Assembly (NCBI GenBank): GCA_964187785.1
Contig: OZ076410.1
Span: 51,274,001 to 51,338,000, forward strand
Origin: Amphiscolops sp. MND2022
Lineage: Eukaryota
Direction of reading: 5' to 3'
Length of the DNA stretch: 64,000 nt
The notes under the pieces were generated by a model, which ran no database searches, was not told the DNA's origin, and was given only the letters and a program-made list of their open reading frames with translations. Shown here one piece after another: positions 1,546 to 48,500 of this stretch. Every line of letters starts with the position of its first letter. Positions within the stretch are counted from its first letter, which is position 1. The position numbers and the translations under genes are program-made.

Positions 1546-3490
1546 TGTTACGTCAGGAAAGGAACATTCGGTACCTGAAATTGGAACCAAAACTACGTCT
1601 CAGGATCGAAATCATAGTTTAATCTAAATAAAAAACAGATGCGGAATTATCTCTAAAAGGAGCGCATATCCAAATTCTAAAATGAAAACCACTTTGAAAT
1701 ACAGGTTAAGAAATTATGCCGTGTCAAAATAAGGCTAGTTAATTGCGTTTGAACAGCATTTAGTGTGTTTTAGAACGGCGATGCTGCGTTAAGTAAATAA
1801 AGGCGGTTGTGAGAACAAACATAAATTTGACGTCACAACTTCGTCTAGGCATACCAAGAAATCATTCCAATTATCCACCATGGCTACGCCACTGCCTCTG
1901 GTGGTCAAACTTTAGGTAGAAATTTTACGTCCACGCTACGTCCACTATATTCGTGGACCTAATCCAAATAAGAGTTTACGTCCGTTTTACGTCCAAAACC
2001 CATCGAAATAGTTGTTTTAACCCATCTAAAGCCCCGAAATTGATAATAGTTAAATTAATCTGGGATAAGGGAGGGATATGTTTAGAATACTTGTGATTTG
2101 AATAAAGAATTGATAAAGACCTGAGAAATTAACGTCAGCACTTCGTCGTAAAGAATAATACTAACCTAAAATCGCTCTAGGAGTTAACATAAGCGAAATT
2201 TCCTCAAGATATACGAGCAAAAGTCACAGTTTATAGTTACAAACAAAATGTACCTGTTGGATATTGTTTTGGAGATGTGTTTTTCGTATGTTTGTATTCA
2301 TATATCCAATTCCTTAGCCATGTGTTTCGTGAAGTTGATCATAATTCTACTCTACAGGGGTTTGTCGCAGACGATCCCAAAACTTGCTTACCAAACTGTT
2401 GCTTTTATAACAAGGCAGTTTTTACTAATTCACAAACTTGTCGTGATCATTGCGTCAGGTTAAAAGCTGCTAAACGTATATTGATTTGTGTCTTAATTGT
2501 TGCAAATTTTGTTTTTGTTATTTTTCTAATTGTTCACTTTTCCAGTTCTTTCAAACTATTTTCCTAGCATCACTCAAATAATCATAACTCAAGTATTAGT
2601 CATAGCATTCGCTCAAGTTAAAATTCAATCAGGTATTAGTTGTTCACGTCAGCGTCATCTCAGCGTCGAACCAACGCAGTAAAACAGGGAATCATATCCG
2701 GTTTGACAGACTGAAGTAATATTTACTTCCTGCTTGGGAGGAAACAAAAGGACGCCGGGATGAAATGATATGATCAAGTTTGATGACTAATACTAGGTTA
2801 GAAGTGTCGTGTCTTAAACTTTGACGAAGCATCGACGTAAAATTGGGAACAAAATGATTTTTTCTTCGAAGATACAGGAAATGACTAATTACTTGGGGAA
2901 ATTTGGAGATTTGATGGTGATCAAAGGTGCTTGGAGGGTACAAATACCATGTGCGATGATGATTAAGGGACTCAATCTTTTCTCACTTAGGAAATTGAGC
3001 TGTTTTTATCTCGCTCGTCTCTAATCTTTATTCTCAACTTTGATAAAAATATCAGTGATCAAGAAAACTTGAAGCTGAGTGTTTTTCAAAGATGTCTACA
3101 ACAAGAAGCCAGAAAAGCAAGAACAATCAACAGGAGAGCTCTGGGAGCGTTAGTGAGTATTTAGTTTCACCGTTTGTAACAGAAAACAATCATTCCTTTG
3201 ATCAGGACGTCAGTTTTCCGGGACCTTCGAGGGCAAAATCCCCAAGGGTCGAAAGTAGCATCTTGGAAACTTTGAGGACCACTTTGAAGGATGAGATAAC
3301 GTCTGAACTCGAGAACTTTTTAGCAGATTCCCAAAAGGAGATATCGAGATTGCTTAAAGCTAAAACAAACACCAATGTTAGAGAGGAGCCCGATGAAGAT
3401 ACCGGAAACGAACCTAGAAGTTTCTATACACCTACTGAGTCAGTTAGAATAAATTCTAGTCAAAACAACGACCCTTGTGGTAGTCGTAAC
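1546..3490 (+). repeat. LTR, family 1 (about 1.95 kb)
   Basis: Inverted termini TGTTACG...CGTAAC. It ends with ...NDPCGSRN, the same way the family 2 LTRs end with ...LEPGCSRN. Confidence 0.7.
3092..3490 (+). pseudogene. gag: gag N-terminus encoded inside the LTR (truncated at the LTR end)
   Basis: MSTTRSQK...LRTTLKDEITSEL...TPTESVRINS...SRN parallels MSIRSQK...TLRKEITEEL...TPVRIRS...SRN of family 2. Confidence 0.65.
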
Positions 3491-4678
3491 GTTGAAGAAG
3501 TACAAGTTCAAACTGATAGTGACAAAGGGTGAAATCCGAGATGGTTTTACGCTGACATACAGCTGGGCGCCTAACCGCTTAGCGCAAGAGTTGGTTTTTA
3601 AACTTCAATCGACATAATGAGTTTCGCGACACTTTGGCTAAACTGTTAGAAGAAGTTTGTTTCCATGTTGAGATTGATCCAAATCTTCAGCCTCTTCACG
3701 GAGAAAGTTTTTTTCAAAAAAAACAACGAGTACTGAAGATGAAGCAAGATTAGATTTCAGGGCAAAAGGACTCTGGAAGTCGAGATTCAGTTGCATCATT
3801 TTTGACGTAGAACTTGTCCCCTCCACTTACCAGAGGCGGCGGGAAAAAAACATTCCCTTCATTAAACAAGTTTCGATTTTGTAAAAACTTTAATTGAAGT
3901 ATCTTGAAAAGAAACTGAGTGATTTTGTACTAAGCTGCTGAATCCAACAGGTTAATTTGTTTGCGTATTATGTTCGACTATTGTGACATTGTTAGCTTTT
4001 GAACTTCAATGTTTTATATGTGTTACCAAGAATGTTCAACGATGTATTTGATGCATTTTGATAGTCAAAAATATAATGTGTTTTGCTGTCCAATGAAATT
4101 ATCTCTTGGGCGATGTATGATTTTCAATACCGATTTTCTTCACGAGTTTTTGGATTTGACAAAGCCATAAACGTTGTCATCATCTTTGTGTCAAGTAGAG
4201 GACATGACAAACCCAACCGTTGTCTAAAAACAAAGATATACAGCTGCTCCAGTACCAGGAAGCATAGGTTCCAGTAACAAGAATACTAGTTGGCAACCAA
4301 ATGAACTCACAGTATACATCATAGGAATAGCTAAACGTTTCGAAGGTGTTCAGTTCATTTGTTTCTTAGTGTAACTAATTACAATCCTTTGTTTCAATCT
4401 TGACTCAATTTTATTCAACTCTGTGTCACTGTCTGCTCCAGGACTGGCATGTTTCTGCCGGAGAGTACAGTTTGGGAGAGGACAAAGTTGTCTAATGTCA
4501 GATAAGTGCTGCTGGAATTAAAACGATTTTGAATTAATAACAGTAGAATAGACTGTGACCAAAGAAAAACACATTCATAGGGAGAAAACTAAGCGGCATA
4601 CTAAAAAAATATAATTCTAACATACTGATAAAATGGCAATTTTCAACAGCTAGGACTAACGCACGTCGCAAACTTTAC

Positions 4679-6505
4679 TGTTGAGAAATGAAACTCAAAG
4701 AACTACTAAAATTGCCTAAGCGAGTTTTTCGATGAACGGAATTTAATCCCAGTGGGATTTCTTCTCAATCAGCACTTTGAGAATAGATATGCGATTTGAA
4801 GTTTCAGTGGCTTTGTTAACAAAAAAACGCGCTTATGATGAAAACTACCCGCAAATACCACACTAAGTGAACAAGTAGTCCAATCAGCTAACAGTACTGA
4901 TCAATGAATAACGTCGCGTTTACGTCACTCACTCAATAAGAATGAAAGAATAACCAACGTCGCTTTTACGTCACGCTCGTGATGCTCACTTAATAATAAC
5001 GGAACAATAGTCTGCGTCACAACTACGTCACTGTTGTACTAGTCCGAATAAAACATGCCACGTCAACGCTGCGTCAAATGTAAATGTTTTTATTAACAGG
5101 TCTCATCAAAGGATGCGCTCATGTAATTTCGTATAGGTAACTAGCCATTTCCTAAGACATTTCGAATTGCTCTAATGTAATTCCGAAAGATTTGATATAT
5201 GATACTCGTATAATGCTCAAGGTTACAGTTAATTGATAACTAATACTAGAAAACTCAATACCCGCCATATTCTAATGATTCAGAAACCTAATCGTCGCTT
5301 TGAAGTTTAATTGATGTTGAATTAATGTTGTGTTGAATTGGTTAATCGTTGCATTGAACTTATTTTCTGAGAAAGTGACCCGATACGGGAAAACGTCTCA
5401 TTAACGTTGCTATGTCAGTGAAGCAGTTTAAGTTAAACCGCACGTCATGCGTGCGTCAGCAAAGTGTTGTTTTCCTGTGATTTCTATAACTTTAATCATC
5501 GATAAGTGTATCAAAGTGTAAATCTCCTTGTCGAAAACGAAACCTTCATTTTCTCCTAGTTTCAAACCAAAGACAATTAGCCGATAAAAAAATCCTCCAT
5601 CAATTTTATGAATACTTTTCTTCCACTAATATTGAATATTCTGTTCACGCAACTTCAGCGGTTCTGAATCTCTCCCGCCATTTCACGATCAAATTGGGTT
5701 GCTTCGGTGATAATGAAAAATCAAAATGAATCACATATCCGGTTTAGCTACTTTTCCCGCGAAATCTTATCCCTTCTAAGGAACTTCCCGCATCCGTTAC
5801 AGGCAAGTTGTTGCGATCATGATGCTACTTGTGAAATGGTTTGAGATCGTTCTTACTTTTCCCGGATAAGACGAATGTTGGGCGTTTCATCGGGGACGCC
5901 TGCATGAACGAATGACGCTAGGAGGGTATATAAACGTAGGAAAGTTAGGAGATTTCACTTAATTTTCATTCTCAAATGTTTTTAGAAAGTTTGTTCTAGC
6001 CTTTGTATTACTGTAAATTGGACTTCTTGAAGATTGTGATTGCAATTCTCAAAACAATCTGCTGGTTGATTATTTCTTGTTCAACAAAATTTCTCGAAAC
6101 CTGAGGATTTATGTCGATCAGAAGCCAGAAAAAGAGAGCTACAAGCCAAGAAGTAGAGGAACCGGAGCGTACGGATCGAGTTTCCCCAAAAGTTTTCAGT
6201 ACTGAGTTTAGGAAAATTGTTGATAACGTCCCTTCCACGTCAACTGATGAAATTGTAACCCAAAACTTCAGTGATAACCCAAAAACTAAAATCTACCCTA
6301 AGAAAAGAGATTACCAAGGAAATAAAAGCTATGTTCGCTCAGTCCTAAAAAGCAATCATACAAGCACTTAGACCGGCAAATAGAGACGATACTGAAATGA
6401 TCAATTTAGACCAAGAGATCACTCCAGTTAGAATACGCTCTTCACCCAACAAGACCGTACGCTTTAACAACGTCGAAAATCTTGAACCCGGTTGTTCTCG
6501 TAACA
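4679..6505 (+). repeat. 5' LTR, family 2
   Basis: Starts TGTTGAGA, ends CTCGTAACA. Colinear with 16563-18440 and followed directly by a TGG-starting PBS. Confidence 0.82.
5927..5934 (+). promoter_or_regulatory. Putative TATA box of the LTR promoter
   Basis: GGG-TATATAAA about 180 bp upstream of the gag ATG. The 3' LTR has GGGTATTTATA near 17860 at the equivalent site. Confidence 0.5.
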
Positions 6506-7276
6506 TGGTGACAGGAGTCCCTAACGACCCTACTCACCCCAACAAAAAAAAACAAAAACCGCACACAAAGCCAATCTCCAGCCGAGGAACGTCCAAACAT
6601 CACCAAAACACTATTCAGCACATCAAGCCAAATGAACACCAACAATGCATTCCCATTGCCCAAGGCCCTCACAATTTCACTACCAACTTTCGACGGTAAG
6701 TGCTAAAAATTCGAATTATCCGAAGATTTTTTCCGAAACAACCTCAAAATGTATCCCCACCTCACTGAAACACAGAAGATAAACTATTTCCACTCCCTCC
6801 TACGGGGCGAGTCATTACAAGCTTTTCGCAACCTTGACGACACTAAAAAAGATAGTTTAGAAGACATAAAAACGACCTTTAAACGTCGATTTGGAGACTA
6901 CTTATCAATGGCCAAAGATTGGTGCGAATGGTACACACTTAAAGTTGACCCATCCACTCAAAAACTACTTGAATTCCTCGACTCACTACAAAAAACAGCG
7001 AAAGAAGCGTTTGGAGCTCAAGCCCAACAATTTATCGACAAGGCAATGCCTAACCACGTGAAAAAGATACTCAACCGCGCATATCTAGAGGACAAACTTT
7101 ACAACGACATTGTTCTCCACCTCGAAAGAGAAATGAGACACAACGGTCTAGGTGCTCCTGACGACGTCATTTTAGTCCCACTGAATCACATTGAAATAAC
7201 AACGGCATCAACCACGAAAGACGAGCCAAAACGACGTTTCTGTTGCTACTGCTACAAATATGGACATTATAATTGA
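6111..7276 (+). pseudogene. gag: gag (frameshifted; starts in the LTR and reads through the PBS)
   Basis: ORF pieces 6111-6371, 6397-6699 and 6749-7276. Capsid-like QKINYFHSLLRGESLQ...KRRFG and a truncated zinc knuckle CCYCYKYGH. Confidence 0.85.
6506..6520 (+). promoter_or_regulatory. Primer binding site
   Basis: TGGTGACAGGAG immediately after the LTR end ...TAACA and absent after the 3' LTR. The first 7 nt match the canonical tRNA-Trp PBS (TGGTGAC). Confidence 0.7.
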
Positions 7277-8130
7277 CGACCAAGTAGACTCAGGTGCATA
7301 CATCCACGCCATATCATGGTCAGACTATATCATGATCAAAACCAACACTGAAAATGGCATCATAAAAGAGTACCTCCAACCTCCTTTCCGAATTGAGTGT
7401 GCAAATGCCCAAATAGAACAACCGATCGTTACAGCAGACGTACAATTCAACATTGGAACGTACTTTTTTACTGATACATTCGTTGTATTGTCACGCACAT
7501 CATTTCCTATAATCGGACTCAATTTCGTGAGAAATCACCAAGCCCTGCTCGACACAGCAAACGGCACCATAACGTTCCCACGTGTAGAAATGACGCTAGC
7601 CATGAAGGACGAAATGAAAAAATGCAATCCTCACCCCATCCAAATAAGGACCAACGGAACACAGACGGTACCAGCACAACAAACTCTAACCGTCAATGCC
7701 GTAGCTATAACCAATATTGAACGCCCTATCACAGGCACAATACAACCACAACCTCAATTCGACGCAGATGCCCAAATCACAGTGGCTCCCGCTCTAGCCA
7801 CTCCTGATAACAAAAAAATCAAAATGAGTGTCGTGAACATCACGGACACCCCCTACACAATACCCACCGAGACAAAAAATAGCTGAACTACAGATACTCA
7901 AACCAGGTGACACAAAAAACATACGCCCAAGTAACGTCGCAGCACTCAAACTACTAGAAGACCCCAACAGTCACGTATGTGAACGAAGTAATGAAAACTG
8001 TTTCTGACCCTTCTGAAACAGACGGATTCTGGTTCCTGACCCCAGAGAACCCTGGGAACGAAGCCGAACTTACGCCCATCCAATAACGCATCCTCAAAGA
8101 AATCAGAGAATTAGAACAAAAAGAAAATTA
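7260..8130 (+). pseudogene. pol: pol: aspartic protease plus beta-rich linker
   Basis: VDSGA active-site motif and IIGLNFV (the G-x-x-F flap-distal motif). Confidence 0.85.
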
Positions 8131-8172
8131 AATCGCACCAAGGTCAGCGAGGCACGCGAACTCTTCCTCAAA

Positions 8173-9128
8173 ATGTTCCAATGGGAAGACTCCCTCATAC
8201 AGGGAGAAGAAAAACAACAACTTGAGGATGTAATAATAGAATACAACGACATTTTTGCACGTCACCGCCTCGACACAGGCATCAACAATGATTTCAAAAT
8301 AAAATTAACACCAAAGAATGAGAACCCAGTATACACACAAACTCTACCCGTGCCGATCAACCTCAAAGAAGACCTCACAGTTGAGCTAGCCTCAATGCAT
8401 AGATGTGGGATCATAACGACACTGCCATTCCCAAAGAATGCACGTCCCATCTTTGCACAACGCATGCCTAACGGCAAACTGCGACTACTGGTAGGTCTGA
8501 GGAAAACGAACGCATTGATGTCAGACGACTACATAAACAATAACCATCTCTTAAGCACACTCACAGACGCAACCCAGCACCTAGCAGGGAAAAAACTATT
8601 CGGCAAACGTGATTGCTCTCAAGCGTACCATTGCCTCCAGATGGCCGACCACGATCAGTCGAACTCTTGGCGTTCAACTTCGCCACTAGATATTTCGCCT
8701 CTGAGAGACTATCGCAAGGACTCAGCAGAGCCCTTTCAGCATTCTCCAGTTTCATGAGAGAATACCTGGATAATGTAATAAAAGCAGACCAATGTGCTCA
8801 ATATGTTGATGTTATTGGCATCGCAGCCAACACGGTCGCCCATTTAATACACAACATCCGAGCAGTCTTTGAGTGCCTACGCAATGCAGGCCTGAAACTA
8901 ACAATAGAAAAATGCCACTTTGGAGTAATCAAAGTAGAATTCCTTGGGAGAACAATAACTCCCCTTGGAACAGCCCCTCAAGACCACAAAATCAAGAAAT
9001 TCCTTGCCAACGTTCCCGAAGACACGAAAACAAGTCCAACGATACATTGGATTCATCAACTGTTATTGAAACTATATACCGAGACTATCAGAGAAACTGA
9101 GGCGATTCTACAAACTTCCCAAACTTGA
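8173..9128 (+). pseudogene. pol: pol: reverse transcriptase
   Basis: PIFAQRMPNGKLRLLVGLRK, DCSQAYH, RLSQGLS, and QYVDVIG (a decayed YxDD), KCHFG...VEFLG. Confidence 0.93.
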
Positions 9129-9129
9129 A

Positions 9130-9699
9130 ACACAGCAAACAGTCGCAGAGGAATTGCTAAACGACTCCAAGGTTATCAACACAGCACTAGCAGACGCCTG
9201 TGGACTAGCACTTAAACAGCCTATTACAGGTCGCCAATACGTCATCATGGCAAATGCCAGCTTTAAAACATCGGCATAAACACTAATGATAGAAGAACAA
9301 GATGAGAAAAAACTTACTTCCAATAAGAAAACATTCGCCCCAGTAGCGTTTGGTTCAAAAGTGTTCTCGCCAGCACAACTCAAAATTTCTATATACTGCA
9401 AAGAATTCCTAGCAAGTTATCATGCATTCCTCGAGTATAGCCATATACTATGGGAAACCACACTACCCACATTAGTCATGACGGATAACAGATCTGTAAC
9501 CAGATTCTTCCAAACAATAGCAAAACCACCAACTTTATGGAACGCCTGCGATTACGTCCTCCAATTCAACTTTAGAATCACACACGTAGCAGAAATGCTC
9601 AACACGGCAGCAGATTTTCTATCTCGGTTGGAACCTAAATCAAAAGAAAAATCCAACTCACCATCCGGGAAGACATACAAAACCTCCCCATACAAATAA
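9130..9699 (+). pseudogene. pol: pol: RNase H (Ty3-type)
   Basis: ANASF (DAS motif), SIYCKEFLA, MTDNRSV, NTAADFLSR. Confidence 0.88.
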
Positions 9700-9899
9700 A
9701 AACGCAATCAACCAATGTAGCAGAAGAAGAACAACTGTTCTTCTTACCCGACGAAACAATAGAGACTGACGAAGAAACGCTAACTAGAAAACAACGTGCC
9801 AAAGAACGAGACCAATCTGAGGCCCACACCTAAACCACAGCAACAATCCAAGAAGCCAACATCATACCCATCAACAAAACGTCATTCACACTAGGAGCT

Positions 9900-10860
9900 A
9901 TCAAAGAGGACGCACGAATCAGAAGCGAACAGGACGCAGACATCATCCTGAAAACAATCAAGGCCAAACTAGCAAACGAAGAACATGACGAACACTTACT
10001 CAAAACTAACCCAACAGCACAGAAACTACTCAAACACGAAAACCGAATAATCATCAAAGACGGAATACTAATGCGCAAATATTACGGAGAAAGTTGCCAA
10101 ACCACTCACCACCAAACAATACTACCAACACAAATCAATCCCGAACTACTAAAAACCTTAAAAGGAGCGACAGCGAAACACCCAGGAATTACAAAGATGA
10201 TACAAGAGTGCCCAGCAAATGTTACCACCCAGGGTTGGCCAGACACATTAAAAAATGGGTAACAACCTGTCAGGAAGGCATCAAATACAAACGAATCAGT
10301 AAACGACAAATACGCCCCAAAAAAATCAACCCCACTGATTTTTCAATGGGACCAGAAGACATCCTCGATAATGATATACTGCCCAACTTACCGTGCTCGG
10401 CAGGATACCAACACAACATCACGATATTCTCACGTTATTTCTTCGCATACCCAACGCAAAACATGACAGCACAAACTGTGGGAAAATGTATCACTGACGT
10501 CATGACGAGACATGTTTATCTCCCCACCACAATAATTTCAGACAAGGGATCGCAATTCACAGCAGAGATGGTACAAGAAATAACCAAGATTCTAAACATA
10601 GAAATCAGACACGCAACCACAAAACATGCACAAACAATTGGCATTCTCGAAAGGACTCATGCCTCAATCAAAATTACACTAAAAATCTCATCCAAGGAAA
10701 TCAATGTGGCACAAATAAGTACAAATCGCAGTCATGAATCACAATACAACATATCACGAAATCATAGGTTGCGAACCATTAACTGTCTTCCATGGTCGCT
10801 TTCCCTACAATGCACTAGACCTTAAACTAGGGATTAAACCCCAATGACAACAACAACGTA
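9900..10860 (+). pseudogene. pol: pol: integrase (HHCC plus DDE core; C-terminus largely deleted)
   Basis: KHPGITK...TCQEGIK, DILPNLP, ISDKGSQF, IGILERTH. Confidence 0.9.
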
Positions 10861-11412
10861 AAGGGGAATTAGTCTACCCGAACCAGAAGTACTAGTACAA
10901 CACAATGACTGGTACGCCAAAGCTTGGGAATCCAATTTTGAAGACCAAAACAAGAACACAACGCCTACGGAACAAATAACCAATAGCACACCACATATTC
11001 AAGAAATCAACCTAACTGACATTAACGACGAATTAGACGAGGACACAACGTCAACTCCGGATTTTTCCATCTTAACAACCGACGAAGGTGATAACCCTTT
11101 CATTACTAACCCCCCACCCATAGAAGACTTAGACTACCAAAACGAATCATCTCCTATTTCAATAGGATATAATCCAAGAAAAGTGCCTGACTTTCGATCA
11201 CTAGACGCTATTGACATAACTCAAAACATAAAACAAATATCAGAGTCCAGACTGAACCAGCCCGACGATGTTCAATTATAACTAACTCAAATCAGAATCA
11301 GTTTATCATAAAAATTCCATTCGAACTTCAGAACAAACTAACCTTAATCATAATAAATATACAACGCAACAGTCAAAAATGATCATAAAAGTCAATCAAC
11401 CGGCAAGAGAGA

Positions 11413-14400
11413 TTACTTTGACAAATTAGAGCCACTTTGGGACTTGGATACACTCCTCGGGCCAACACGTCCTCTACCACGCTGACCAGAAGTGACAACA
11501 CGTCCCGAAGAAGAACCACCAGCTCCAAAAATTGGTGTCACAAATGCTCCTCCATCATCTTTCACAGCTTGAGGTTTAGTACCGGACTTGGCAGACACAA
11601 CGGATGACGTAGCAACAGATGATTAGGTTGTCCCAAATTTAACAATTTGGGGAGCGACGAAAACCTGACGATTTGTGGTATAAGCTGCTTTATAATGTGA
11701 CTCAGCACTCTCCACCTGATCCTGCAAATAAGAAGTGTATGCAGCATCCAATCGACGAAACAAACCAGCGAAATCTGCAGTGTACACACCATCCCAAAGA
11801 TTAAAATCTATGAAAATCTTTCTCTATGAAAGCATCAGCACCGCCCAATGACTGTCGAACCATATCAATAGTCGTCGAAGCGAAAAACGACGACTGGTCG
11901 TAGCTAGCAGAACTAACAAAAGACTGCACACTTCTCAAACATGATATCAGCAACCCAGGACGAATGACACACTCGCTAAAGTCGAAATCAATAGAGGCTG
12001 GGACGACATCTTGGTTTTCAACAAATAAACAGCACAACTGAAACACCCGCATAAGGCAATGGCGAGACTGAAAAGCAAATTGACGCATCAGATACGTCAC
12101 TACATTTTTGACATCACTGGAAACAGTCCCTCCAGACACATGCCACTGCCGAGCTTCCTCCACATAAAGCAAGAACTCAGACTTGCTCTCAGCAACTTTC
12201 CTTGACGATAACAATCCGCAGCGACCAAGACAGCCCACAAGTTTCGCAAATAAATCAAATACGACGACGTCATCTCCGTCAAGTAATAATTCTGGGCAAA
12301 AGCAATATAAGCCCTGAGAAACTGGTGACGAACAAAAAACAGTTTGATGAACCTTGTCCACGAGACGTTCCAGAAAACGACGACACTCCAGACGGAACTC
12401 TCGTCACCACTCATTTTGGCTGTCAATAGAACCTCCCAAAAGGCTGATTAACTAAGAACAGGTCGTCAGCAAAAGGGCTCATCTTCTTCACTGGTTCTGC
12501 TGTCGTATACCCTTCCCACTGATGGATATTAAGTAAACAACCAAGGGCCCGAGTCTTTACCAGCAGACAAAAAACAAAGTGACACAGCTCACTCAACAAT
12601 GAAACCCACAGTCGTCACGTCGCTGTGCCATTTTCTTGAAATTCAGGTGAACAAAAACACAACAGCTTCAACCAAACATACCAAACCACAAACCACAAGA
12701 GCAGAAAGAACAACAGAGAAGAGGACAATTGGAATCAGTCCACATAAGAACGCAGGAAGTTGCCAAACACAAATAAGCAGAAACAGCCACAATTACAATC
12801 ATGAAGAGACACACATACTTACATAACTCTAGGACCACCTGTCGGAGTCCAAGTCTAAGAGGAATTAGCTTATCGGCAAAGATCAGCCAACCAGTTCCTC
12901 TTGTCTAAAGCAGACATACATAATAAATGCAACGCAGAACAAGATGTCACAAACGGGTATAACAAAAAACGAACGTCAAAATTACGTCAACACAATACTC
13001 ACATCGTCCTTTTTGACCTTAATATGCGCCGGACCGGTATAACGAACAAAATGCTGAATGGGCTGCCACAGAGACACGAGATCTTCAACCACAGCAGGTA
13101 TATCCTCAAAGTGCATACGTCCCCGCGGACACAGCGGGGAGAATAACATGACCAAAAAGCCATTCCTCGTGGAGAGCAGTACGCAAACGTGACATCAGAT
13201 AATCAACCACTGTCACAATGTCTATCATACCAAAGATGTCCTGGTGAGCCTGTTGAATACACTTCATCAAAACAACAGGTGAAAAAAAGGGTCGGTAGGG
13301 CACAATCGTCATCCCATCGTCTCGAACAGCATTCAAACAATGACGAAGTGCTACCGACAACCGCCACTGGGAATTTCGAATCACCCACACTACTGGCGAT
13401 GCGACACAAGCATGACAGCTCAGCACGCGGCTGTCGGGCTTGAAGGTCCTTCCCCAAGAACACACACTCGCTTCAGGCGCAACTCATTCCACGTCCGCAC
13501 ATAGCAATAAACAACATCGCCCTGCTCTTTGAACTCCACACCATAATGCTTCAAGCACCCAACTGCAGAAAACACAGAACGAAGAACGCGCGGATACATT
13601 GCGTCACAGATGAGAGCCTACGAATACCAACACACCCAACAAAATACGCGTAAACTACCAGTCTTTCACAAAAAAAAGGAGAAACGGGATTCCTATCCCA
13701 CATAAAGGAAGACTTACCAAAGTATCAGGCTTGCTCCAAACGATGTGGTAAACAGGGTCGGACTCAGATAAAGCAGCTCGGAAGAAACCCACAAACGACG
13801 CAACATTGTATAGCTGCCTCCTCCTCGTAGAACTTCCGTCAAGCAACTAACCATAGTCAGAAGCGGCACCTTTGACGTAACCTGGCTTTGCTTCGACAAC
13901 TTATTTCCGGAAAATAGATAGCCGGCCGTTTTTTCTTTAGAAGGACGACTTCGGTAATCAGCCAATTGAGCATCAGTGAGAGTACTAGCTTGACGAAACT
14001 GATTGTAAACTGGCAACGTTTGTGGACGCGATAGGTTATGTCACGCTCCCAATGACGATCCGAAGCAAAATGACGGTTAATCTCTCACGACCCACGGCTC
14101 TCTATGGAAACATCTCGTTCACACATGGTACAAAAGAAGCTAGTCGACTTTCGGTTCTTGGACCCAGAGACAAACTCAGACAAAATGTCGTTGCCAGCAA
14201 CCATGTCCTTGCGAAGATGGCTACGAGAATTATACTTCCTTTTCTTCTTGGGCGTAGCAACCAAATACTCCAGTGAGTCACCAATTTCAGCAGCAACATC
14301 AGCAAGTCCTGAAAAACAAACCTCTGTCCGAACCCCTTCCCCAAATAGCCTTACGTTCAACAAATACACTACACAACTTTACCCTTTCTACAAAATGGAC

Positions 14401-15385
14401 ATACAACATAGAAACCAACCTGAAACTAACGGATCCACGGCAGTTGATTCAACCTCCGAGGCAATATGGCGACACAAACTCATCACTTGTGCGAACGTCA
14501 TCTCCACGGGCGTCCCACCAAGGAAATCACAGCGGTCAGCACACATAAAACACATAAAACAAAAAAAAACAATGAAGCTGACGGGACTGACTTCCCAACT
14601 TACCATCAAAACGCTTCCGAATGGCCTCATCTGTCAATGAAGTCGACAGCGACGACACGCGAGAACGTCCTGGGGGAGTTTCCAAAAAAACAACGCAACG
14701 TCATTGTCATCGTCATCGATTTCAGTACCACTAGACTGACAAGAGGCAAGTACGGTTGACAAACCCATAAACACTCTTAGTACTAAAACCCGGAAAAACG
14801 TCAACAAAAGAAAAATCAAAAACGAAAACCAAAACGAGCCTAATTTCAAACCAAAAAAATTTACTACGTCTAGTCTTGCGTGTTTTGACAGTAGCGGTAG
14901 AGAATTTCAATTTGTCCTGGATAGTAACTTCCACGGAACCCTCCTTTGTGTCCAGCAAGTTTCTCTCCTTCCTCTTCCTCAGTTGCCTCTGGCGGAAGTC
15001 TGAATCTCCTGGGTGGGATAACTCCTCGCGGGACCGAGTAAATTCTTTCATTCCAGGTCTAGCGGAGTAGCGTCGAGGGAGTTGCGTGGGGAGGAGCAAG
15101 AGGTTGGCGCAGAGACCACAGCAGGGACTGGAAAGAAAGAATTGAAAAGTCAAAATCGACTACCTAGTCAACAGGTATGAGTATTTGACCTGATCAATCA
15201 AGCAAAATACGATGTTAGGGCTAGATGGAATTCTCAAAATAGAACTAACCAGGGCGAAAAGGCAAATCGGTTTTTCCCCCCTCACTAAGGAAAATATCGC
15301 CGTCAGAGGAACGGTATTGAGTTTCTTCTCCACTAGCCACATCGTGCTGCACGGGCATAAAAGAAGCAGACTGCTCCTCAGACAT
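11413..15385 (-). pseudogene. Antisense multi-exon accessory gene: BED/C2H2 finger plus hAT-transposase-like protein
   Basis: ATG at 15385. Frame-consistent introns: 15128-15249 (GTTAGT..CAG), 14309-14419 (GTTGGT..CAG), 13618-13717 (GTAAGT..TAG), 12905-13002 (GTGAGT..TAG). Further GTAAGT donors at 14603 and 12822. Finger CTMC-x16-H-x5-H at about 14050-14135. hAT-like blocks. Stop codon at 11413. Confidence 0.75.
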
Positions 15386-15624
15386 TCGGACAGAACGAAA
15401 ACTCTGAAAAGAAATCAACAGATACTAAACAGTATGAAAAGCAAGCCAACGTCAAGCTCACGTCAAACAAACTGGAAATTATCAATAAAACAAAAAGAAG
15501 GAAAATGCAAAGAAACAGCCAATCAAATTCGAGGATTAGCCCTGAAGAAACGGAGACAGTTACACTTTTCAATATGCGACCAAACAAATCCTGGTACAGC
15601 ACCTACTCTTAACACTAAATAACA

Positions 15625-16402
15625 ATGGAAAATATAGAACTAATTAACCTGATTTCCCCATGCAAATCTGAATCCAACATTTAGAACTAATTAGTTCTAT
15701 GGAACCCAAATTATAGAACTAATTAATCTGATTTCCTCATGCAAATCTGAATCCAACATACAAACTACAGCTATTCCCGTGCCTAAAACAAAAGGAACAA
15801 GAAGGAAGCAAACAATAAACCTATCTTCTACCTCCCTCGACGTGGAAATCAGCGATGATGACGAGCTTGACTCGTCAATAGAAACAGTACAAGAAACCTA
15901 CAAGAGAATGAAACTAGAAAGCGATTAGAACAGCTTCATATCCCTACTGTCAGAAGAAGGCTACCCCCCATCAAATATTGAAAGTCCCTCTACTCAATCA
16001 GGATTCATAGTAGAAGGACAGGAATTAATTCATCGGATTACTACGAAGAGGGAAGCGTAAAAGACACTGGCCTGACAGCGGCAGAAGACTCCAACAAAGA
16101 GCCACTCACCTTATTTCATCACTCCACCGGGGCCACTGAAACAAGTAGATGTAAAAAAAACCAACTCACTAAACGACCTGATTAGCCCACAAGTGTCATT
16201 ATCGTCACGACGATCAGAGAGAGAGGCAGTTTACCAAGTGTACAAGCAGACGTCACCCGCTCGTCAGCCATTTATGAGACAGTTTCAACCCATGACAGTG
16301 GCCCTGTCACAGTCAGTTCCAGAACTGGCATATTCTTGCCGAAGAATACAGTTTGGGAGAGGACATGGTTGTCTAATGTTAGCTAAGTACTGTTGGTATT
16401 AA
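15625..16402 (+). pseudogene. Sense accessory ORF (acidic, unknown function), family 2
   Basis: MENIELINL...DDDELDSSIETVQETYKRMKL...SGFIVEG...TVALSQSVP. Homologous to 679-1431. Confidence 0.55.
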
Positions 16403-16562
16403 AACGATATTAACTTAATAGCAATAGAATAGACTGTGACCAAAGAAAAACACATTCATGGGGAGAAAACTAAACGGCTTACTAAAGGAAACTATTATTC
16501 TACCATACTGATAAAATGGCCCTTTTCAACAGCTACGGACTACCGCACGTCGCAAAATTTTT

Positions 16563-18440
16563 TGTTAAGAAATGAAACCCAAAGAACAATACTAAAATTG
16601 CCTTAGCGAGTTTTTGCATAAATGGAATTTAATCCCAGTGGACTTTCTATTCAATCATCTCTTTGAGAATAGATATGCGACTTGAAGTTTCAGTGGCTTT
16701 GTTAACAATAAAACACTTATTGAATATCGTCAAATAAACTACAAAGATGCCGTAATTCATTAAGACGTTTTCACCAACGCGCTTATCCTGCAAATTACCC
16801 GCAATTAACACACTAAGTGAATAAGTAGTCCAATCAACTTACAGTACTGATCAATGAAAAACGTCGCGTTTACGTCACTCACTCAATAAGAATGAAAGAA
16901 TAGCTAACGTCACGCTCGTGATGCTCACTTAATAAGAATGGAATAACAGCCTACGTCACAACTACGTCACTATTGTACTAGTCAGAATACAACATGCCAC
17001 GTCAACGCTACTTACTTCAAATGTAATCGTATTTCTTAACAGGTCTCATCAAGGATGCGCTCATGTAATTTCTTATAGGTAACTAGCCATTTCCTAAGAC
17101 ATTTCGAAATGCTCTAATGTAATTCCGAAAGATTTGATATATGATACTCGTATAATGCTCAAGGTTACAGTTATTTGATAATTAATACTAGATAACTCAA
17201 AACCCGCCATATTCTAATGATTCAGAAACCTAATCGTCGCTTTGAAGTTTAATTGATGTTGAATTTATGTTGTGTTGGATTTGTTAATCGTTCCATTGAA
17301 CTTATTTTTTGAGAAAGTGACCCGATACGGTAAAACGTCTCATTAACGTTGCTATGTCAGTGAAGCAGTTTAAATTAAACCGCACGTTATGCATGCGTCA
17401 GCAAAGTGTTGTTTTCCTGTAATTTCCATAACCTTGATCATCGATCAGTGTATCAAAGTGAAAATCGCCTTGTCGAAAACGAAACCTTCATTTTCTCCTA
17501 GTTTCAAACCAAGGGCAATTAGACGATAAAAAATCCTCCATCAATTTTATGAATACTTTTTTTCCACTAAATTTGACTATTTTGTTCACGCAACTTCAGC
17601 GGTTCTGAATCTCCCTACATTTCACGGTTAAGTTGGGTTGTTTCGGTGATAATGAAAAATCAAAATGAATCACATTTCCGGTTTAGCTACTTTTCCGCGA
17701 AATATTATCACTTTTAAGGAACTTCCCGCATCCATGACTAGAAATTTGTCGCGATCATGATGCTACTTGTGAAATGGTTTGAGATTGTTCTTACTTTTCC
17801 CGGAAATGACGAATGTTGGGCGTTCCATCGGAACGCCTGCATGAACGAATGACGCAAGGGTATTTATACGTAAGAAAACGAGGAGAATTTCTCGTAATTT
17901 TCATTATCAAATCTTGTTTAAAGTTTGTTCTAGCCTTTGTATTCCTGTAAACTGGATTTCTTGAAGATTGTAATTGCAATTCTCAAAAGAATCATTTTGT
18001 TATTTAATTCTTGTTCAACAAAATTTCTCGAAAGTTCTCGAGAACTTGTGTCTACCAGAAGCCAGAAAGGAAAGCTGTAAGTCAAGAAGAAGAGGAACCG
18101 GAGTGTACGGATCAAAATCCCCCGAAAGTTTTCAGTACTGAGTTTAGGACATTTGTTGATAACGTCCCTTCCACGTCAACTGATGAAAATGTAACCCAAA
18201 ACTTCAGTGAGTTTGAGAATCTAAAATCCACCCTAAGAAAAGAGATTACTGAGGAACTAAAAGCTCTGTTCGCTCAGTCTTGGAAAGCAACCATACGAGC
18301 AATTAGACAGGCAAATAGAAACGATACTGAAATGATCAACTTAGACCCAGAGATCACTCCAGTTAGAATACGCTCTTCACTCAACAAGACCATACGCTCT
18401 AACAACGTCGAAAATCTTGAACCCGGTTGTCCTCGTAACA
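16563..18440 (+). repeat. 3' LTR, family 2 (contains a gag N-terminal ORF at about 18050-18440)
   Basis: Starts TGTTAAGA, ends CTCGTAACA. Colinear with 4679-6505 but with many substitutions and indels. Confidence 0.85.
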
Positions 18441-19589
18441 ATCTGAATTACCCTAACTTTTGTTTACATTCGATTCTTCCGTGTGTTGGCAAGGAGGGCT
18501 CAAAACGTCGTCTGCCGACACAAATTGCAAGTCTCAGGTGTTACCTGCTTGCTATAGCTGTGGTCATCAGCTACACTTGTCGAAAAAACTCTATCATTTT
18601 TGAGTGATTTGTTAAATATTCTTGCTTCAAGAAGACTTCCATTGCCGAATTTGATGTTCTGGATGTCTCTTCTATCTGCCACCAGCGCATCCCAGCACAT
18701 ACAGCAATCGTCTCAGTCCTGTTCCCAGCTACGCAGTTTTGTTTGTTGTAACATGGAGGTTAGGCCCGTCACGAATTTTCATGATTGCTGAAACTGTAAG
18801 CTCTGCTTCACACTTCAGAGTCTGTGTTTCTCAAAACATGAGACTCTGTGCTTTTCAAGACATCCGCGTCTAGTAATAGCTGGACATCAGCGAACTTTTT
18901 TGTACCCTCGAAAAACTGCCAAACGCGTTTTTTTAGTACAGACGTTGTTGAGACGTCCAAAGTTGCATTTTTTTCATAAATTTTTTCAAGTTTTGGAGCT
19001 TTTTGAGCAGCTTGTTTTTGAATTTGTTGTTGGGTGCTAATTTTTTGAAGTTTTTTTTCTTTTGACCTGGGTGAAAGGGCGATAAATCGAAGTTCGATTT
19101 CCCGCTACTTGTTTGATATTCTGCCTCATAAGAATACTGATGCAAAGAGAATGTAGCTTCTTTTGAGACAATTTGAGAAAAAACGGATTGAGAGAAATTG
19201 CAAAAACGTAGTTTTTTGCAGAACACATTGCAAAACACAGAGTTTTTAACCAGGAGAACAAAAATTCAATGTAGTAGGGGTTGAACAAATTCAATTCGGT
19301 TATCATTACGCAATTCAAAGATATTTGTGAAATTTCAAGAATATCATCCTGTTTAGTGCATGCAATGTGTTGGAAATCTTGTAGATTTTTTTCTGAGAAC
19401 GCTTTTTACATGTAGACACACAGCGTCGAAATTCACAGCCTCGAAAATAAGTTTTTGGTCCCACAGGGTCGAAAGCAAATTTCTGGCTGAATAACCAGTC
19501 AAAACTTTTTGCATTGAGCTAATCACATTACAAAAAAATGATAACAGCACAACCGGCGAAATAATTACGATATTGTAATCAGCCATGCT

Positions 19590-43660: not shown

Positions 43661-44585
43661 CCATTATTCGAAGCATCAGTATTCCGAAAACAAATTTACG
43701 GTTCCATTATCCCGAAAACAAAATTTTGAGTTCCAAAGTTCCGAAAAACTTTACACGCAGTAAATACTGCGCGTCGTAGTCCTATGATTTCATTCGATGA
43801 AACAATCACATTCCAATAAAAAGAAAACAGCGCGATAATGTAATCAGCTATGCCCACCTACCCCTACCCCTAGTGCACAAATGCAGGAGCGAAGAAACAT
43901 CAAAAGAGGTTAAGGGAATTCAGTATCAGAGAGGTAGAATTACAAATTTTTGGGGTTACGGTTTAATAGGAGTGGTTTTCGGAGTGATTGTATGAATTAT
44001 AGTAGTAGTAATTGAAGAGGGGATGATAGGGATTGGATTTAAAGGAGGACAATGTAAGATTAAAGAAGAGGTTTGAGATTAGTTGATAGTATCAGTAGAA
44101 ACTGAAGAGGAAACAGACCATTTATTAGAGTCTGCAGAACTGGAGGATGAAGGAACAGGATCCAGGATGGAAACACAACCAATTTTGAAAAATATTAGGT
44201 GGTTATAAAAAAGTATATTAGTATAGTTAAAAAGTATTGTGTCAATGGATAGCGGTTGTGTTAATAGATAGTAAATTTCACAAAAGAAAACAGAGATTTA
44301 CAAGTCTTATTGTTTAATCGACTGTTCAGTCAGAGATTGTGAATAAAAGGAACAGAGGGTATTCATGGAGATGGCTAATTAGATTGTGAACGTCAAATGT
44401 CACGCAAAATTATGTCTTGAGACAAAGGACAATTCAGCGAGAGTCTGACGGTAACTGTAATTAGGGATTGAATATGAAATTAAGGGGGGAAGCTAATAGT
44501 GGGTTTTGAGTTATGGTAACCTTGCGGTCGGAGGGGAAGAAAATTATATGGAGAATGAGGAGCTCGAAAATGAGTGGGTCAGGCT

Positions 44586-44918
44586 GGGGCAGAGACATTT
44601 CGTCACCAGCCATTTGGGCGACAAATATTTCTGCCCATTTCGGAGATAATAATGTCGCCCAAATGTCCCGTCAATTATGTTCACACACCCCTAGTGCCCT
44701 AAATGAAGGAGCGAAGCGACGTGCCATATCGCCATGCCTCAATGTTGCTACTTGGCGAAGGGAGCGAAGCGACCGAGCCATACAACAATTATCCTAACTT
44801 CTTTAAATATATCAGTTATATGATCAATTTCATCAACCCATTTGGTCGACACTTTTGTCGCCCATGTGACCGACGCCATATGTCACCCAAATGGCTGGTG
44901 ACGAATTGTCCCTGACCC
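44586..44918. mobile_element. MITE with about 37-bp terminal inverted repeats
   Basis: Left GGGGCAGAGACATTTCGTCACCAGCCATTTGGGCGAC; right GTCACCCAAATGGCTGGTGACGAATTGTCCCTGACCC. It interrupts a sequence that is contiguous in the copies near 58940 and 60270. Confidence 0.88.
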
Positions 44919-45559
44919 GGTAAATCTTGAGAGTCTGGTAAAGATTCAAACGAAAAACTTGGGGAATCAGCAACACGTGGATAAAAATGAGGAAAAGAGG
45001 TCGAATGAAAAATGGGGTTTTGGTTCATTTCAAAATCAGATTCTGTGGAGTTGAAAGTTTCATGTAAATTATCATTTAGAGGAGTGGAAGGAGATAAGTT
45101 TTGATAGATAGAAGGAGAATGTAAATTTGCTTGGGGCTGTGCAATGGTTTTATTAGAGGTGTATAGATTAAAAGATTCGAAAGGGGTGTCCGATTCATGT
45201 TGAGGTGAGTAAGAAGGATTATCGTGATAAAAGTCAGGATCATGATTGTTAAAAACTGAGGGAGTAGAATGGTTTTGACGGCGATATGGTAAAATATTGG
45301 GTTCTTTGGGATAATTTGGCAAAATTTGCTTGCGATGAGGGTGAAAAGTAGAGCCATCTTGGGCCATAAGTTCTTAAGTAACATCGGAGAGATGTTGAAT
45401 AATTTTGTACGGGCCAAGTTGGAGGGGTTTGAGTTTGTTGGAGAATTTAACAGCATTAAAATTGGTGTTTATAACAAAATAGTTAGGAAGAAAGTGTTTT
45501 TGAAATGAGTGGTTTCAAGTGTGGAATTTTGTGAATTCACTTTCATGGTTACTTGACGA

Positions 45560-48500
45560 TGAACAGTAGAATATATTTCCAACATTTCATGTACAGCTGT
45601 TAAAAGTTTAAGGAAATATGTTAATAGAGGAGTGAGAGGAAATAGGGATTGAGATCTTGGTCACTAAAATGTGTATGAGGTGGAAGTGAATTAAAGTATG
45701 TTGCAATACAGTTTTAAAAACCGTCACTTAATAATCTAAGAGAAAACGTTAATGGAGTACGAGGGTGTGCATGGACAACAATTTGATATGGGGAGAGTTT
45801 CAGTTGAGAAGATGGAGTAGTTTCGTTACCAACAGCATAAATTTGAGTTTGAAATGACCAATTAGAAGTAGAATTTTGTAGAAAAAAAGGAGGTGATTTC
45901 CAAGATTGCAATTTTAAACTTCGACTAAACCATTTGTGCGAAGGGAGTACTGAGTACGTGGAGAGTGAACAATATTGAAGAGAGCAAAAATGGGCCATTT
46001 CTTGATTCATATAATCAGTAGTTCGATCAGGGACTATATATTGCGATGGGCGAAATTTAAAACTCCAATGATGGAGGAGTGATTGCATAGGATATTTGGA
46101 AGACATAAGAGAGGCAGGGTTGACGACAACCAATTGAGTAAAAGCGTCAATGATTAGAAAAATGTAGGAGGTTCCTTGCGAAGAAGGAGAAATAGGTCCT
46201 TTAGCGTCCTTGGAGATTCGATACTCAAAGTGATTTGCAAAGTCAAAAAATGGTAAAGGAGAAGAAATAAATTTGGTTTATTAGGAAATTGTTTGTTCGT
46301 TTGGCATTCAATACAAACATGAATGAAAATAGAGAACCATAAATGTAAATGGGGACTATAGAAAAATTGATTGAAAGTTTTAATAAAGAGTTTTTCACCG
46401 GAAAGACCATGTCAAAAGGTTTCACTGAAAGCAGTATAAAAAAACTTAAATGACGAACAAAAGCGACATTGGTTATAAGAGGGTTTAGTTTTGCAAAAAA
46501 TTTCTTCAAAAATTCTCGAGTTGGGTGTATCATATTAGATAAGATGTGAGTTTGGGTGAAAATATAAATGTTGGGAGTGCTTGTAATATGTATAGAGAAA
46601 AGAAGAATTAGTTTTAATAATAATTGGAGTCAAAGTGTGAGGTCTTTGTTTCTGTGTCAGCTACGTATAAATGATGGAGAGAACAGGAACGTCTTTTTGG
46701 GCTTGAAGAAGAATGGGTTTTGTTAAAAAAGTATTAGATAAAAGAAAAAAGTATTCAAAAGCTTTACAATGAGCAAAAATGCAGAAATTGAAAAATGACA
46801 TTGACTGGGTGGAGGTAGGTATAATAGGAGTTTGTTTTATATCATAGCGTTAGAATGAGCAGAATCAAAACGAGGAAAAGAGGTGGAATGATAAATTAGG
46901 TTTTTGAGTTTTTCAAAATAGAAGTCTGTGGAATTAAATCTATCACCTAAATTATCATTTAGAGGAGTGGAAGGATATAAATTTTGATAGGTAGGAGAAC
47001 GTAAATTCGCTTCATGCTGTGCAATGGTTTTATTAGAGGTGTGTGGATCGAAATATTCGAAAGGGGTGTCAGATTCATGTTGAGGTGAGTTAGAACGAAT
47101 ATCTTGATACGAGTTAGTGTCAAGACTTGTTAAAATGTGAGGGAGTAGAATGGTTTTGACGTCGAAATGGTACAATAATAGGTTCCTTGGGATAATTTTT
47201 GCAAAATTTGTTTTCGATGAGTGTGAAATGTAGAGCCACCTTGGGTCATAAGTTCATGAGTAACATCGGAGAGATGTTGAATAAGTTTTGTACAGGCCAA
47301 GTCGGAAGGGTTTAAGTTTGTTGGAGAGTTTAATAGGTTTAAAAACGGCGTAGATAACAAAATTGTTAGGAAGAAAGTGTTTTTGAAATGTGTGGTTTCA
47401 AATGTGGATTTTTGTGAATTCAATTTCATGCTTAAATGACAATGAACAGTAAAATTTAATTCCAACATTTCATGTTCAGCTGTTGAAAGTCATAAGGAAA
47501 TATGTTTATAGAGTAGTGAAAGGAAAAAGGGATTGAGATCTTGGTTACTAAAATGTGTATGAGGTGGAAGTGAACTAAAGTATGTTGCAATACAGTTTTA
47601 AAAAGCGTCACTTAATAATCTAAGAGAAAATGGTAATGGAGTACGAGGGTGTGCATGGAAAACAATTTGATATGAGGAGAGTTGCAGTTGAGAAAAAGGA
47701 GTAGTTTTGTTACCATCAGCATAAGTTTGACTTTGAAATGACCAATTAGAAGAAGAAGTTTGTAAAAAAACGGAGGTCAGTTCCAAGATAACAATTTTAG
47801 ACTTCGACTAAACCATTTGTGCAAGGGAAGTAATGAGTGCGTGGAGAGTGAATAATATTGAAGAGAGCAAACATGGGCCATATCTTGATTCATATATTCA
47901 GTACCTCGATCAGAGACTATATATTGCGGTGGGCCAAATTCAAAACTCCAATGATGGAGGAGTGACTGCATAGCCTATTTGGAAGAAATATGAGAGGCAG
48001 GGTTGACGACAACCAATTGACTAACAGCGTCAATGATTAGAAAAATGTAGGAGGTTCCTTGCGAAGAAGGAGAATAAGCTCCTTTAGTGTCCTTGAAGAT
48101 TCGATACTCAAAATGATTTGCAAAGTCAAAAAATGGTAAAGGAGAAGAAATTTAACTGGTTTAGTAGGAAACTGTTTGTTCGTTTGGCATTCAATACAAA
48201 CATGAATGAAAATAGAGAACCATAAATGTAAATGAGGAATATAATAAAATTGATTGAAAGTTTTAATAGAGAGTTTTTCACCGGAAAGACCATGTGAAAA
48301 GGTTTCACTGAAAGTAGTATAAAAAACTTAAATGACAAACAAAAGCGAAATTGGTTAATAGAGGGTTTAGTTTTATAAAAATTTCTCCACAAATTCTGGA
48401 GTTGGGTGTATCATATTAGATATGATGTGAGTTTGGGTAAAAATATAAATGTAGGAAGTGCTTGTAATATGTATAGAAACAGAATCAGTTTTAATAATTG

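Follow-up and report, generated by a model that had tools for sequence, protein, structure and literature searches.

Our analysis points to a lineage of Ty3/gypsy retrotransposons that carries a selected antisense gene with a hAT fold, whose product would be catalytically dead and would serve the element as a DNA-binding accessory. We give this reading a probability of roughly 80%. Beyond gag and pol, members of the lineage carry an extra gene on the opposite strand, which lies tail to tail with pol in the interval from integrase to the 3' LTR. The copy that led to this finding lies in the window, by which we mean the whole 64,000-nucleotide stretch of Amphiscolops sp. MND2022 DNA that was analysed. 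That copy has long been a pseudogene, and work on the intact gene is better directed at other copies.

The window element, a Ty3/gypsy-type LTR retrotransposon, is an old and broken copy from a very abundant lineage. On the plus strand, gag (DUF1759), reverse transcriptase (RT), RNase H and integrase follow one another between two long direct repeats at 4424-6505 and 16305-18440, which are 90.8% identical (JC distance 0.099) and both start with TGTCAC. The TG start of these repeats and the order of gag followed by protease, RT, RNase H and integrase are the Ty3/gypsy features found in the window. The upstream repeat (plus strand) spans the 5' LTR, the 5' leader and the start of gag. The broken gag (6280-7276, plus strand) was recognized by its DUF1759 match and by 36-63% amino acid identity to the intact gag of a related element from another assembly, L058; the gag-like tblastn match begins at 6280, inside the upstream repeat. 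The pol region (protease, RT, RNase H and integrase; 7266-11209, plus strand) is split over several frames, with Pfam matches to RVT_1, RT_RNaseH, rve and Integrase_H2C2, and is collinear with the intact 1714-aa pol of L058 at 47-79% amino acid identity. The downstream repeat (plus strand) holds the 3' LTR and then continues into a second, truncated leader and gag start, a tandem arrangement that obscures the 3' end of the element. Between the antisense gene and the 3' LTR lies a spacer (15386-16304), the presumed location of the antisense promoter, in which two 52-nt direct repeats bear the TAGAACTAATTAGTTCTA palindrome. Upstream of exon 1, the palindromic motif TAGAACTAATTA was sought in other subfamilies as well; it was not found to be conserved there and is therefore not put forward as a binding site.

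The antisense gene was mapped by projecting the exon map of a near-intact copy, L023, onto the minus strand of the window, which gave introns of 122, 111, 100 and 98 nt plus three further introns. An earlier note on this DNA had described four of these introns and quoted two of the junctions, and both were correct (13717-13618, 100 nt, and 14419-14309, 111 nt, each GT..AG). Exon 1 (15250-15385) begins with an ATG at 15385-15383 and ends at the donor GTTAGT. It is followed by a low-complexity acidic region in exon 2 (14865-15127), which is frameshifted in the window copy, and by an acidic, Ser-rich N-terminal region in exons 3 and 4 (14799-14604 and 14555-14420), where the junction between the two is uncertain since some copies read open straight across it. 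Exon 5 (13718-14308) contains an NLS-like KKKRK, a zinc finger and a helical domain preceding the catalytic core, and has acquired one stop and two frameshifts. Exon 6 (13003-13617), with at least three frameshifts, covers the RNase-H-like core (beta1-beta5) and the start of an all-alpha insertion domain, while the 27 codons of exon 7 (12823-12904) retain an intact AG..GTAAGT. Exon 8 with its TAA stop (11413-12651, coding 12651-11416) shows 53% amino acid identity to exon 8 of L023; it encodes the C-terminal half of the insertion domain, the last RNase-H-like helices and a basic, Ser-rich tail, and several frameshifts interrupt it.

The earlier claim that this strand splices into one open reading frame did not hold for the window copy. 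An in-frame TGA (14087-14085) falls within the finger, exons 5, 6 and 8 each change frame several times, and the acceptors of exons 4 and 8 are no longer AG. These lesion counts come from nucleotide alignment to L023 and are minimum counts, since at 66% identity that alignment yields compensating indels. The window copy is thus a non-functional pseudogene. The proposed finger C-x2-C-x16-H-x5-H is indeed present (14052-14132, minus strand, in exon 5), but its x16 spacer is broken by the TGA. The piece LFFTCCFDE, which the note took as the counterpart of the hAT CxxH motif with its His missing, lies out of frame; by homology to L023 and to the database homologue P0112 the coding frame there reads VPYRPFFSPVVLMKCIQQ. 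No RNA run was found to contain the stretch; the four runs that match it proved to be DNA contigs of one sample, and the predicted splice joints were absent from these DNA contigs.

The protein predicted from about eight exons would have approximately 900-1000 residues. It comprises four parts, namely an acidic, Ser-rich N-terminus, a conserved Cys2His2 BED-like finger, an RNase-H-like core with a large helical insertion and a basic tail. The structure model is that of P0112, a full-length homologue only 31-32% identical to exons 5 and 6 of the window family, and was obtained at a pLDDT of 88.4 and a pTM of 0.79. Using Foldseek with this model against the PDB, the best 12 matches were all Hermes. 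Among the Swiss-Prot models the best 30 matches were all hAT-derived, and the best match among the AlphaFold DB clusters was ZBED8 (E 2e-11). The model has the layout of hAT proteins, with an RNase-H-like core split by an all-alpha insertion and a helical DNA-binding or dimerisation domain before it. A feature search of the ESM-Atlas gave a weak lead (0.87) from exon 8 to Dimer_Tnp_hAT/FAM200. Two Trp residues, W310 and W342, are conserved in the family and may correspond to the hAT RW motif. AlphaFold on exon 6 as a single sequence reached a pLDDT of 38 and was unusable. A weak ESM-Atlas lead (0.86) from exon 6 to an Mrr/PD-(D/E)XK nuclease was dropped, since the core in the confident model is RNase-H-like.

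Sequence comparison gave no such signal. No Pfam match was obtained for ten window pieces, the L023 exons, ten database homologues or 70 alignment members, and neither PF05699, DUF4371 nor zf-BED was found in the 70 family members at E <= 1. Searches of the PDB by sequence or profile returned no match for the antisense protein, and DUF4371 (PF14291) had no match in the source genome. With five genuine hAT transposases from the source genome, HHalign yielded only a 26-column match at a probability of 0.04%. The homology to hAT transposases claimed in the earlier note is therefore borne out by structure (Foldseek, AlphaFold DB) and not by sequence (Pfam, PDB search, HHalign). This gap in the sequence evidence, together with TM-scores of only 0.3-0.55 for the structural matches, is what speaks for a real and selected RNase-H-like protein not of hAT descent, its likeness to Hermes being convergent or reflecting another DDE superfamily. 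We consider that origin improbable. The best AlphaFold DB matches of the model are all hAT-derived, and the proposed origin of the gene from a class II transposase, within a class I element, draws its support from the fold rather than from sequence.

An alignment of the family was used to read the active site and the finger. The finger ligands C14, C17, H34 and H40 (model numbering) are invariant in 27/27 members. The exon 6 Lys at 13530-13528 occupies the beta1 position, which is the first catalytic Asp in hAT transposases, as the first reading of the window had proposed. Across the family this site is occupied by Q in 12 sequences, R in 9, K in 6, H in 3 and L in 1, and the site after beta4 by G in 23, D in 4, N in 3, S in 2 and T in 1. 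The DDE triad was read at these two positions only, and the candidates for the third (Glu), E539/E544, E580 and Q625, conflict between aligned ranges and motif spacing. The alignment thus indicates that the two canonical active-site Asp positions are non-acidic across the family, with the Asp after beta4 kept in few members, and it favours the non-catalytic role suggested for the protein.

The protein could still be an enzyme, a nuclease or strand-transferase that uses non-canonical residues in cDNA end processing or integration. In its favour, conservation reaches 85% or more in several acidic or polar columns (E210, E220, D290, E337, D344, E544 and Q625), the candidates for the third catalytic position conflict, and an Asp after beta4 is retained by 4 of 34 sequences. 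However, the 31-34 sequences that cover these sites share no acidic residue, either on beta1 or after beta4, of the kind that the DDE triad of hAT transposases would have, and the element possesses an integrase of its own; we judge continued enzymatic activity to be a poor prospect. A protein that has lost transposase chemistry remains our preferred reading.

The coding potential of the gene was assessed on other copies of the family, a comparison that the earlier note had recommended. Between subfamilies, dN/dS was 0.07-0.19 when the predicted frame was read and 1 or higher in both other frames, and substitutions fell mainly at third codon positions (44/23/101 in exon 5). Other copies keep these exons open; together with the excess of third-position substitutions, this takes the exon pattern beyond chance. 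In L023, exons 5-8 provide 842 open codons with AG..GT at all boundaries, and the intronless 890-aa P0112 aligns straight over the exon 5/6 junction. The antisense gene has thus been subject to strong purifying selection during the diversification of the elements.

The introns also follow the lineage. The intron sites of L058 are those of the predicted gene, and dispersed copies retain the same sites, which agrees with the suggestion that introns pass through retrotransposition. They are kept between lineages approximately 37-40% identical in protein and are absent from a sister clade, so that intron-bearing and intron-free clades occur side by side in one genome.

LTR elements sometimes transduce host sequence (PMC11963269), and the gene might accordingly be a fragment of a host gene, a passenger of no service to the element. 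Such genes, however, occur in one or few copies (PMC11963269), whereas this one adjoins an intact gag-pol, is present at thousands of candidate loci and shows the low dN/dS given above across deeply diverged lineages, which makes a passenger very unlikely.

The selected gene is instead an integral part of its lineage. Four diverged copies in the genome are collinear in the order LTR, antisense gene, pol, gag, LTR, with 64-66% nucleotide identity to the window in the gene and 70-73% in pol. In elements from other assemblies (L039, L040 and L058) the gene is again antisense and in the same position beside PR-RT-RH-INT; L058 combines its intact pol (RVT_1, RT_RNaseH_2, RT_RNaseH, Integrase_H2C2 and rve) with a 469-aa gag. 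The gene was internal to the LTR element in all copies examined, and first-look counts of candidate loci in the source genome were 7218 and 11116, many with open frames. These data agree with the initial description of a Gypsy LTR element carrying an antisense, intron-containing gene, in that gag-pol domains lie between the repeats and the gene is collinear in related elements. A hAT DNA transposon nested by chance in this one Gypsy copy, conceivable in a genome with many genuine hAT transposons that have open transposase frames of 597-697 aa, is already contradicted and retains practically no weight, because four subfamilies and elements of other assemblies carry the gene at this position and in this orientation, no inverted repeat pair (TIRs) or 8-bp TSD was found around it in the window, sequence comparison detected no likeness between it and the genome's own hATs, and two of its catalytic Asp positions are non-acidic.

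To account for these observations we propose that a promoter within or close to the 3' LTR would drive antisense transcription and that the resulting mRNA would be spliced. The introns would escape removal because the genomic RNA that serves as template for reverse transcription carries them in antisense orientation. The protein, devoid of transposase chemistry, would be a nuclear, probably multimeric, DNA-binding accessory factor of the element, and its tasks might include control of the element's own transcription or silencing, or element targeting. This accessory function is suggested by analogy with domesticated hAT proteins, and the gene would then be a counterpart of the spliced antisense HBZ gene of HTLV-1. 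A more ambitious reading, which we hold only tentatively and consider somewhat doubtful, is that a large Ty3/gypsy clade recruited a DNA-transposase scaffold as a trans-acting accessory protein with inherited, antisense-protected introns, and that this protein binds element or target DNA for transcription, anti-silencing or integration steering.

LTR retrotransposons have few accessory genes, and these are poorly understood; the antisense ones come mainly from plants and are of unknown function (PMC7264820, PMC11963269). Full-text literature searches turned up no account of a hAT-fold gene borne by a retroelement. If our reading is correct, a class II transposase scaffold is maintained by strong selection within a class I lineage, at thousands of candidate loci, and transposase 'domestication' would have been carried out by another transposon and not by the host alone. 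The gene would offer a natural system for the retention, gain and loss of introns under reverse transcription of the opposite strand, as well as a specific candidate protein through which a retrotransposon might regulate itself or direct its targeting by binding DNA.

Several known systems resemble parts of this arrangement. Hermes and other hAT transposases have a similar fold, but the antisense protein differs in its non-acidic Asp sites, in its sequence, and in a C-terminal extension of approximately 70 residues plus the basic tail, and its gene has no TIRs or 8-bp TSD; it rides a retrotransposon and moves through RNA. HBZ of HTLV-1 is transcribed from the 3' LTR and spliced, and acts as a factor on viral transcription. 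This retroviral protein is short, of the bZIP type, and has no homology to the antisense gene, whose transcription is predicted. HBZ is likewise encoded antisense, to gag-pol-env, and its protein is nuclear (PMC11963269). Another parallel is aORF-3R of the plant Tat/Retand, Grande and RIRE2 Ty3/gypsy elements, which lies antisense between pol and the 3' LTR, is conserved by lineage and is suspected of a DNA-binding or regulatory role (PMC11963269, PMC7264820). The gene described here shares with aORF-3R its place between pol and the 3' LTR in most copies of the lineage and in different species. However, aORF-3R proteins are mostly Transposase_28 (PF04195) and described from flowering plants, whereas the present protein has a hAT fold, and the introns of its gene are conserved in one clade and lacking in the sister clade. 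The best AlphaFold DB neighbours are the domesticated hATs (ZBED5/8, FAM200, EPM2AIP1, ZNF862, P52rIPK, GTF2IRD2 and RICESLEEPER/DAYSLEEPER), which also keep a zinc finger and the hAT scaffold without transposition, and some of which have been described as transcription factors (PMC3424704). Those are host genes, whereas the antisense gene is multi-copy and evolves with a mobile element.

The window's Ty3/gypsy-type LTR element has, in the interval from integrase to the 3' LTR, a minus-strand gene that is a decayed example of a real phenomenon, an antisense gene of a retroelement. The host element occupies approximately 4.4-18.4 kb on the plus strand, bounded by a pair of long direct repeats at 4424-6505 and 16305-18440 (both plus strand), which start with TGTCAC and are 90.8% identical (JC distance 0.099). 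Since the LTRs have diverged by about 10%, the insertion is old. The gag (DUF1759), RT, RNase H and integrase regions, which sit between the repeats, are all split over several frames. The downstream repeat extends into a second leader and gag start (tblastn matches 6280-6537 and 18164-18454) before it breaks off; the locus is therefore not a simple single element but an LTR, internal region, LTR and truncated internal region, and looks like a tandem or recombinant arrangement. Upstream of the 5' LTR, a gag-like fragment (3098-3355, plus strand) with 37% amino acid identity to gag residues 2-77 of L058, an element from another assembly, is probably a remnant of a further related element. The interval separating exon 1 of the antisense gene from the 3' LTR contains two 52-nt direct repeats (15629-15759) with a perfect palindrome, TAGAACTAATTAGTTCTA (four motif matches against 0.66 expected), and the palindrome was not found in the other subfamilies fetched. 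Farther downstream, 44000-64000 has a GC skew of +0.35 to +0.55 over 20 kb at approximately 33% GC, a strand asymmetry, with no tandem repeats and no ORFs longer than 224 aa.

The 4-kb antisense-gene stretch recurs at dozens of sites in the 1.07-Gb genome with 64-88% identity. In four diverged copies, read from 10 kb fetched on either side, LTR edge, antisense gene, pol, gag and LTR edge follow one another in the same order, and nucleotide identity to the window is 64-66% in the gene and 70-73% in pol. Relatives in other assemblies (P0208 and P0204) are likewise antisense, tail to tail with the adjoining PR-RT-RH-INT. In L058, gag (469 aa) and pol (1714 aa) are both intact, the pol is 47-79% identical to that of the window, and the gene is present in its split form. 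A nested hAT insertion in one Gypsy copy is excluded by this constancy of position and orientation among the four copies and in other assemblies, and by the lack of inverted repeats, none of which were found flanking the gene. These were among the points on which the earlier note had staked its proposal: other family copies do carry the gene, and flanking TIRs were not found. Its suggested selection test also came out in favor of a real gene: in the predicted frame dN/dS was 0.07-0.19, against at least 1 in both other frames (L023, a near-intact copy elsewhere in the genome, versus the window or a further copy, L002). Mismatches per codon position in exon 5 were 44/23/101.

The exon map was built on L023 (G000:C9:62934361-62939869), which belongs to a different subfamily and is far better preserved than the window copy. 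It has eight exons, with AG before each but the first and GTTAGT or GTAAGT after, and its exons 5-8 form 842 codons without interruption and a stop at the end. Projected onto the minus strand of the window, the exons are E1 (15385-15250), E2 (15127-14865), E3 (14799-14604), E4 (14555-14420), E5 (14308-13718), E6 (13617-13003), E7 (12904-12823) and E8 (12651-11416, followed by TAA). The boundary of E3 with E4 is uncertain, since in some copies the reading continues across it. All four introns proposed earlier (122, 111, 100 and 98 nt) are included in this seven-intron model, and the two junctions quoted for them are exact (13717-13618, 100 nt; 14419-14309, 111 nt; both GT..AG). The single open frame claimed to result from splicing is not present in the window copy, which has a TGA within the zinc-finger spacer (14087-14085), multiple frame switches in each of E5, E6 and E8, and lost acceptors at E4 and E8. 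As a whole, the initial observation is thus partly confirmed. L022 and L023, the best-preserved pair of their subfamily, share a frameshift in low-complexity exon 2 (L023 876-1144), and in L023 Gln replaces the first His of the finger, so even these copies are not fully intact. Donors in L023 are GTTAGT, not GTAAGT, at 5 of 7 sites, as is the exon 5 donor of L058; this may mirror the donor consensus of the host, or else be peculiar to the element. Intron sites in L058 are as in L023, with donors GTTAGT/GTGAGT.

An exon 8 search of 1.84 billion representative proteins gave 452 clusters at E <= 1e-3, all nameless ENA entries. The full-length homologue P0112 is a single 890-aa ORF without introns, 31-32% identical to exons 5 and 6, and its alignment crosses the exon 5/6 junction unbroken (TWSKTETF/VVLTHTLYPRIL versus TWSKPETL/PLICDALYPRVL), which lends independent support to the predicted splice site.

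Sequence searches turned up nothing: Pfam did not match the exons or 70 family members, PDB was not matched by sequence or by profile, and, compared by HHalign with five aligned hAT transposases of this genome that are genuine and carry the motifs, the family gave a probability of 0.04%. The predicted structure points clearly to the hAT fold. AlphaFold2 modeled residues 95-800 of P0112 from a 70-row family alignment with pLDDT 88.4 and pTM 0.79. In Foldseek, the best 12 PDB matches were Hermes hAT transposase throughout (E 7e-5 to 3e-3), the best 30 Swiss-Prot model matches were all hAT-derived (including ZNF862, P52rIPK, ZBED5, EPM2AIP1, FAM200, ZBED6, SCAND3, RICESLEEPER, Ac and GTF2IRD2), and the top match among AlphaFold DB clusters was ZBED8 (E 2e-11, TM 0.51). 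The structural check proposed in the earlier note thus recovered the hAT fold, using the homologue's model. The modeled topology fits the hAT plan, with an N-terminal finger and helical domain, beta1-beta2-beta3-alpha-beta4-alpha-beta5 at residues 179-264, a helical insertion at approximately 268-593, and, C-terminal to it, a last strand and helix rejoining the core. All four ligands of the finger, C-x2-C-x16-H-x5-H, are invariant in the family alignment. The beta1 site, where hAT has its first Asp, is Q/R/K/H in the family and Lys in the window (13530-13528), and at the post-beta4 site 23 of 34 sequences have Gly and 4 have Asp. The suggestion of a non-catalytic protein is supported by these two sites; another ground offered for it, a missing CxxH His, came from a piece read out of frame (LFFTCCFDE), where the homologous frame reads ...VPYRPFFSPVVLMKCIQQ... 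Together, these data show a protein under selection, with a predicted hAT fold and a zinc finger and without the two Asp, encoded antisense inside a retroelement.

In six-frame genome searches, exon 8 gave 7218 first-look candidates, the majority of the scored ones just 39-43% identical to L023 with frames open for 400-450 aa, and P0112 gave 11116, with many unbroken frames of 872-918 aa. Split and single-ORF forms therefore coexist in large numbers, many of them intact. In a maximum-likelihood tree of the C-terminal half, single-ORF forms make up one clade (100/98), and a second (98/94) contains split forms, among them the window's family and L058; more distant rows, apparently split too, fall outside both. 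Split status was checked by inspection in L023, L058 and L059 only. Under a midpoint root, itself not established, the tree suggests an ancestral origin of the introns, followed by a single loss. Divergence is faster in the gene than in pol: compared with L058, the gene is 35-43% and pol 47-79% amino acid-identical. The genome's genuine hAT transposons share no sequence relationship with the retroelement gene. They are abundant (2215 first-look candidates for PF05699), with open 597-697-aa transposases bearing canonical D, D, CxxH, RW and E motifs, for example G000:C7:12941800-12944700 (L053), C1:77180900-77183700 (L054) and C3:11859800-11862600 (L055).

Transcription of the gene would start in the spacer (15386-16304) or the 3' LTR, and the mRNA would be spliced. 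Four sequencing runs that contain this stretch are DNA contigs and show no splice joints. As the genomic RNA is the opposite strand, the introns would outlast retrotransposition; dispersed copies share the same introns, consistent with such retention. The protein may serve the element as a DNA-binding accessory factor, whether a regulator, an anti-silencing or a targeting factor, by analogy with those domesticated hAT proteins that have been called transcription factors (PMC3424704), and with HBZ and other antisense genes of retroviruses (PMC11963269).

Membership of the active hAT transposases is ruled out, since the triad, sequence motifs and TIRs all fail. Full-text literature searches turned up no description of a hAT-fold gene carried by a retroelement, and the additional ORFs catalogued in bdelloid rotifer elements do not include hAT or transposase. 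The gene belongs with the antisense accessory genes of LTR retrotransposons. Plant Tat/Retand, Grande and RIRE2 elements are known to carry antisense accessory ORFs, mainly with a Transposase_28 domain and of unknown function, and there, as here, the antisense gene lies between pol and the 3' LTR.
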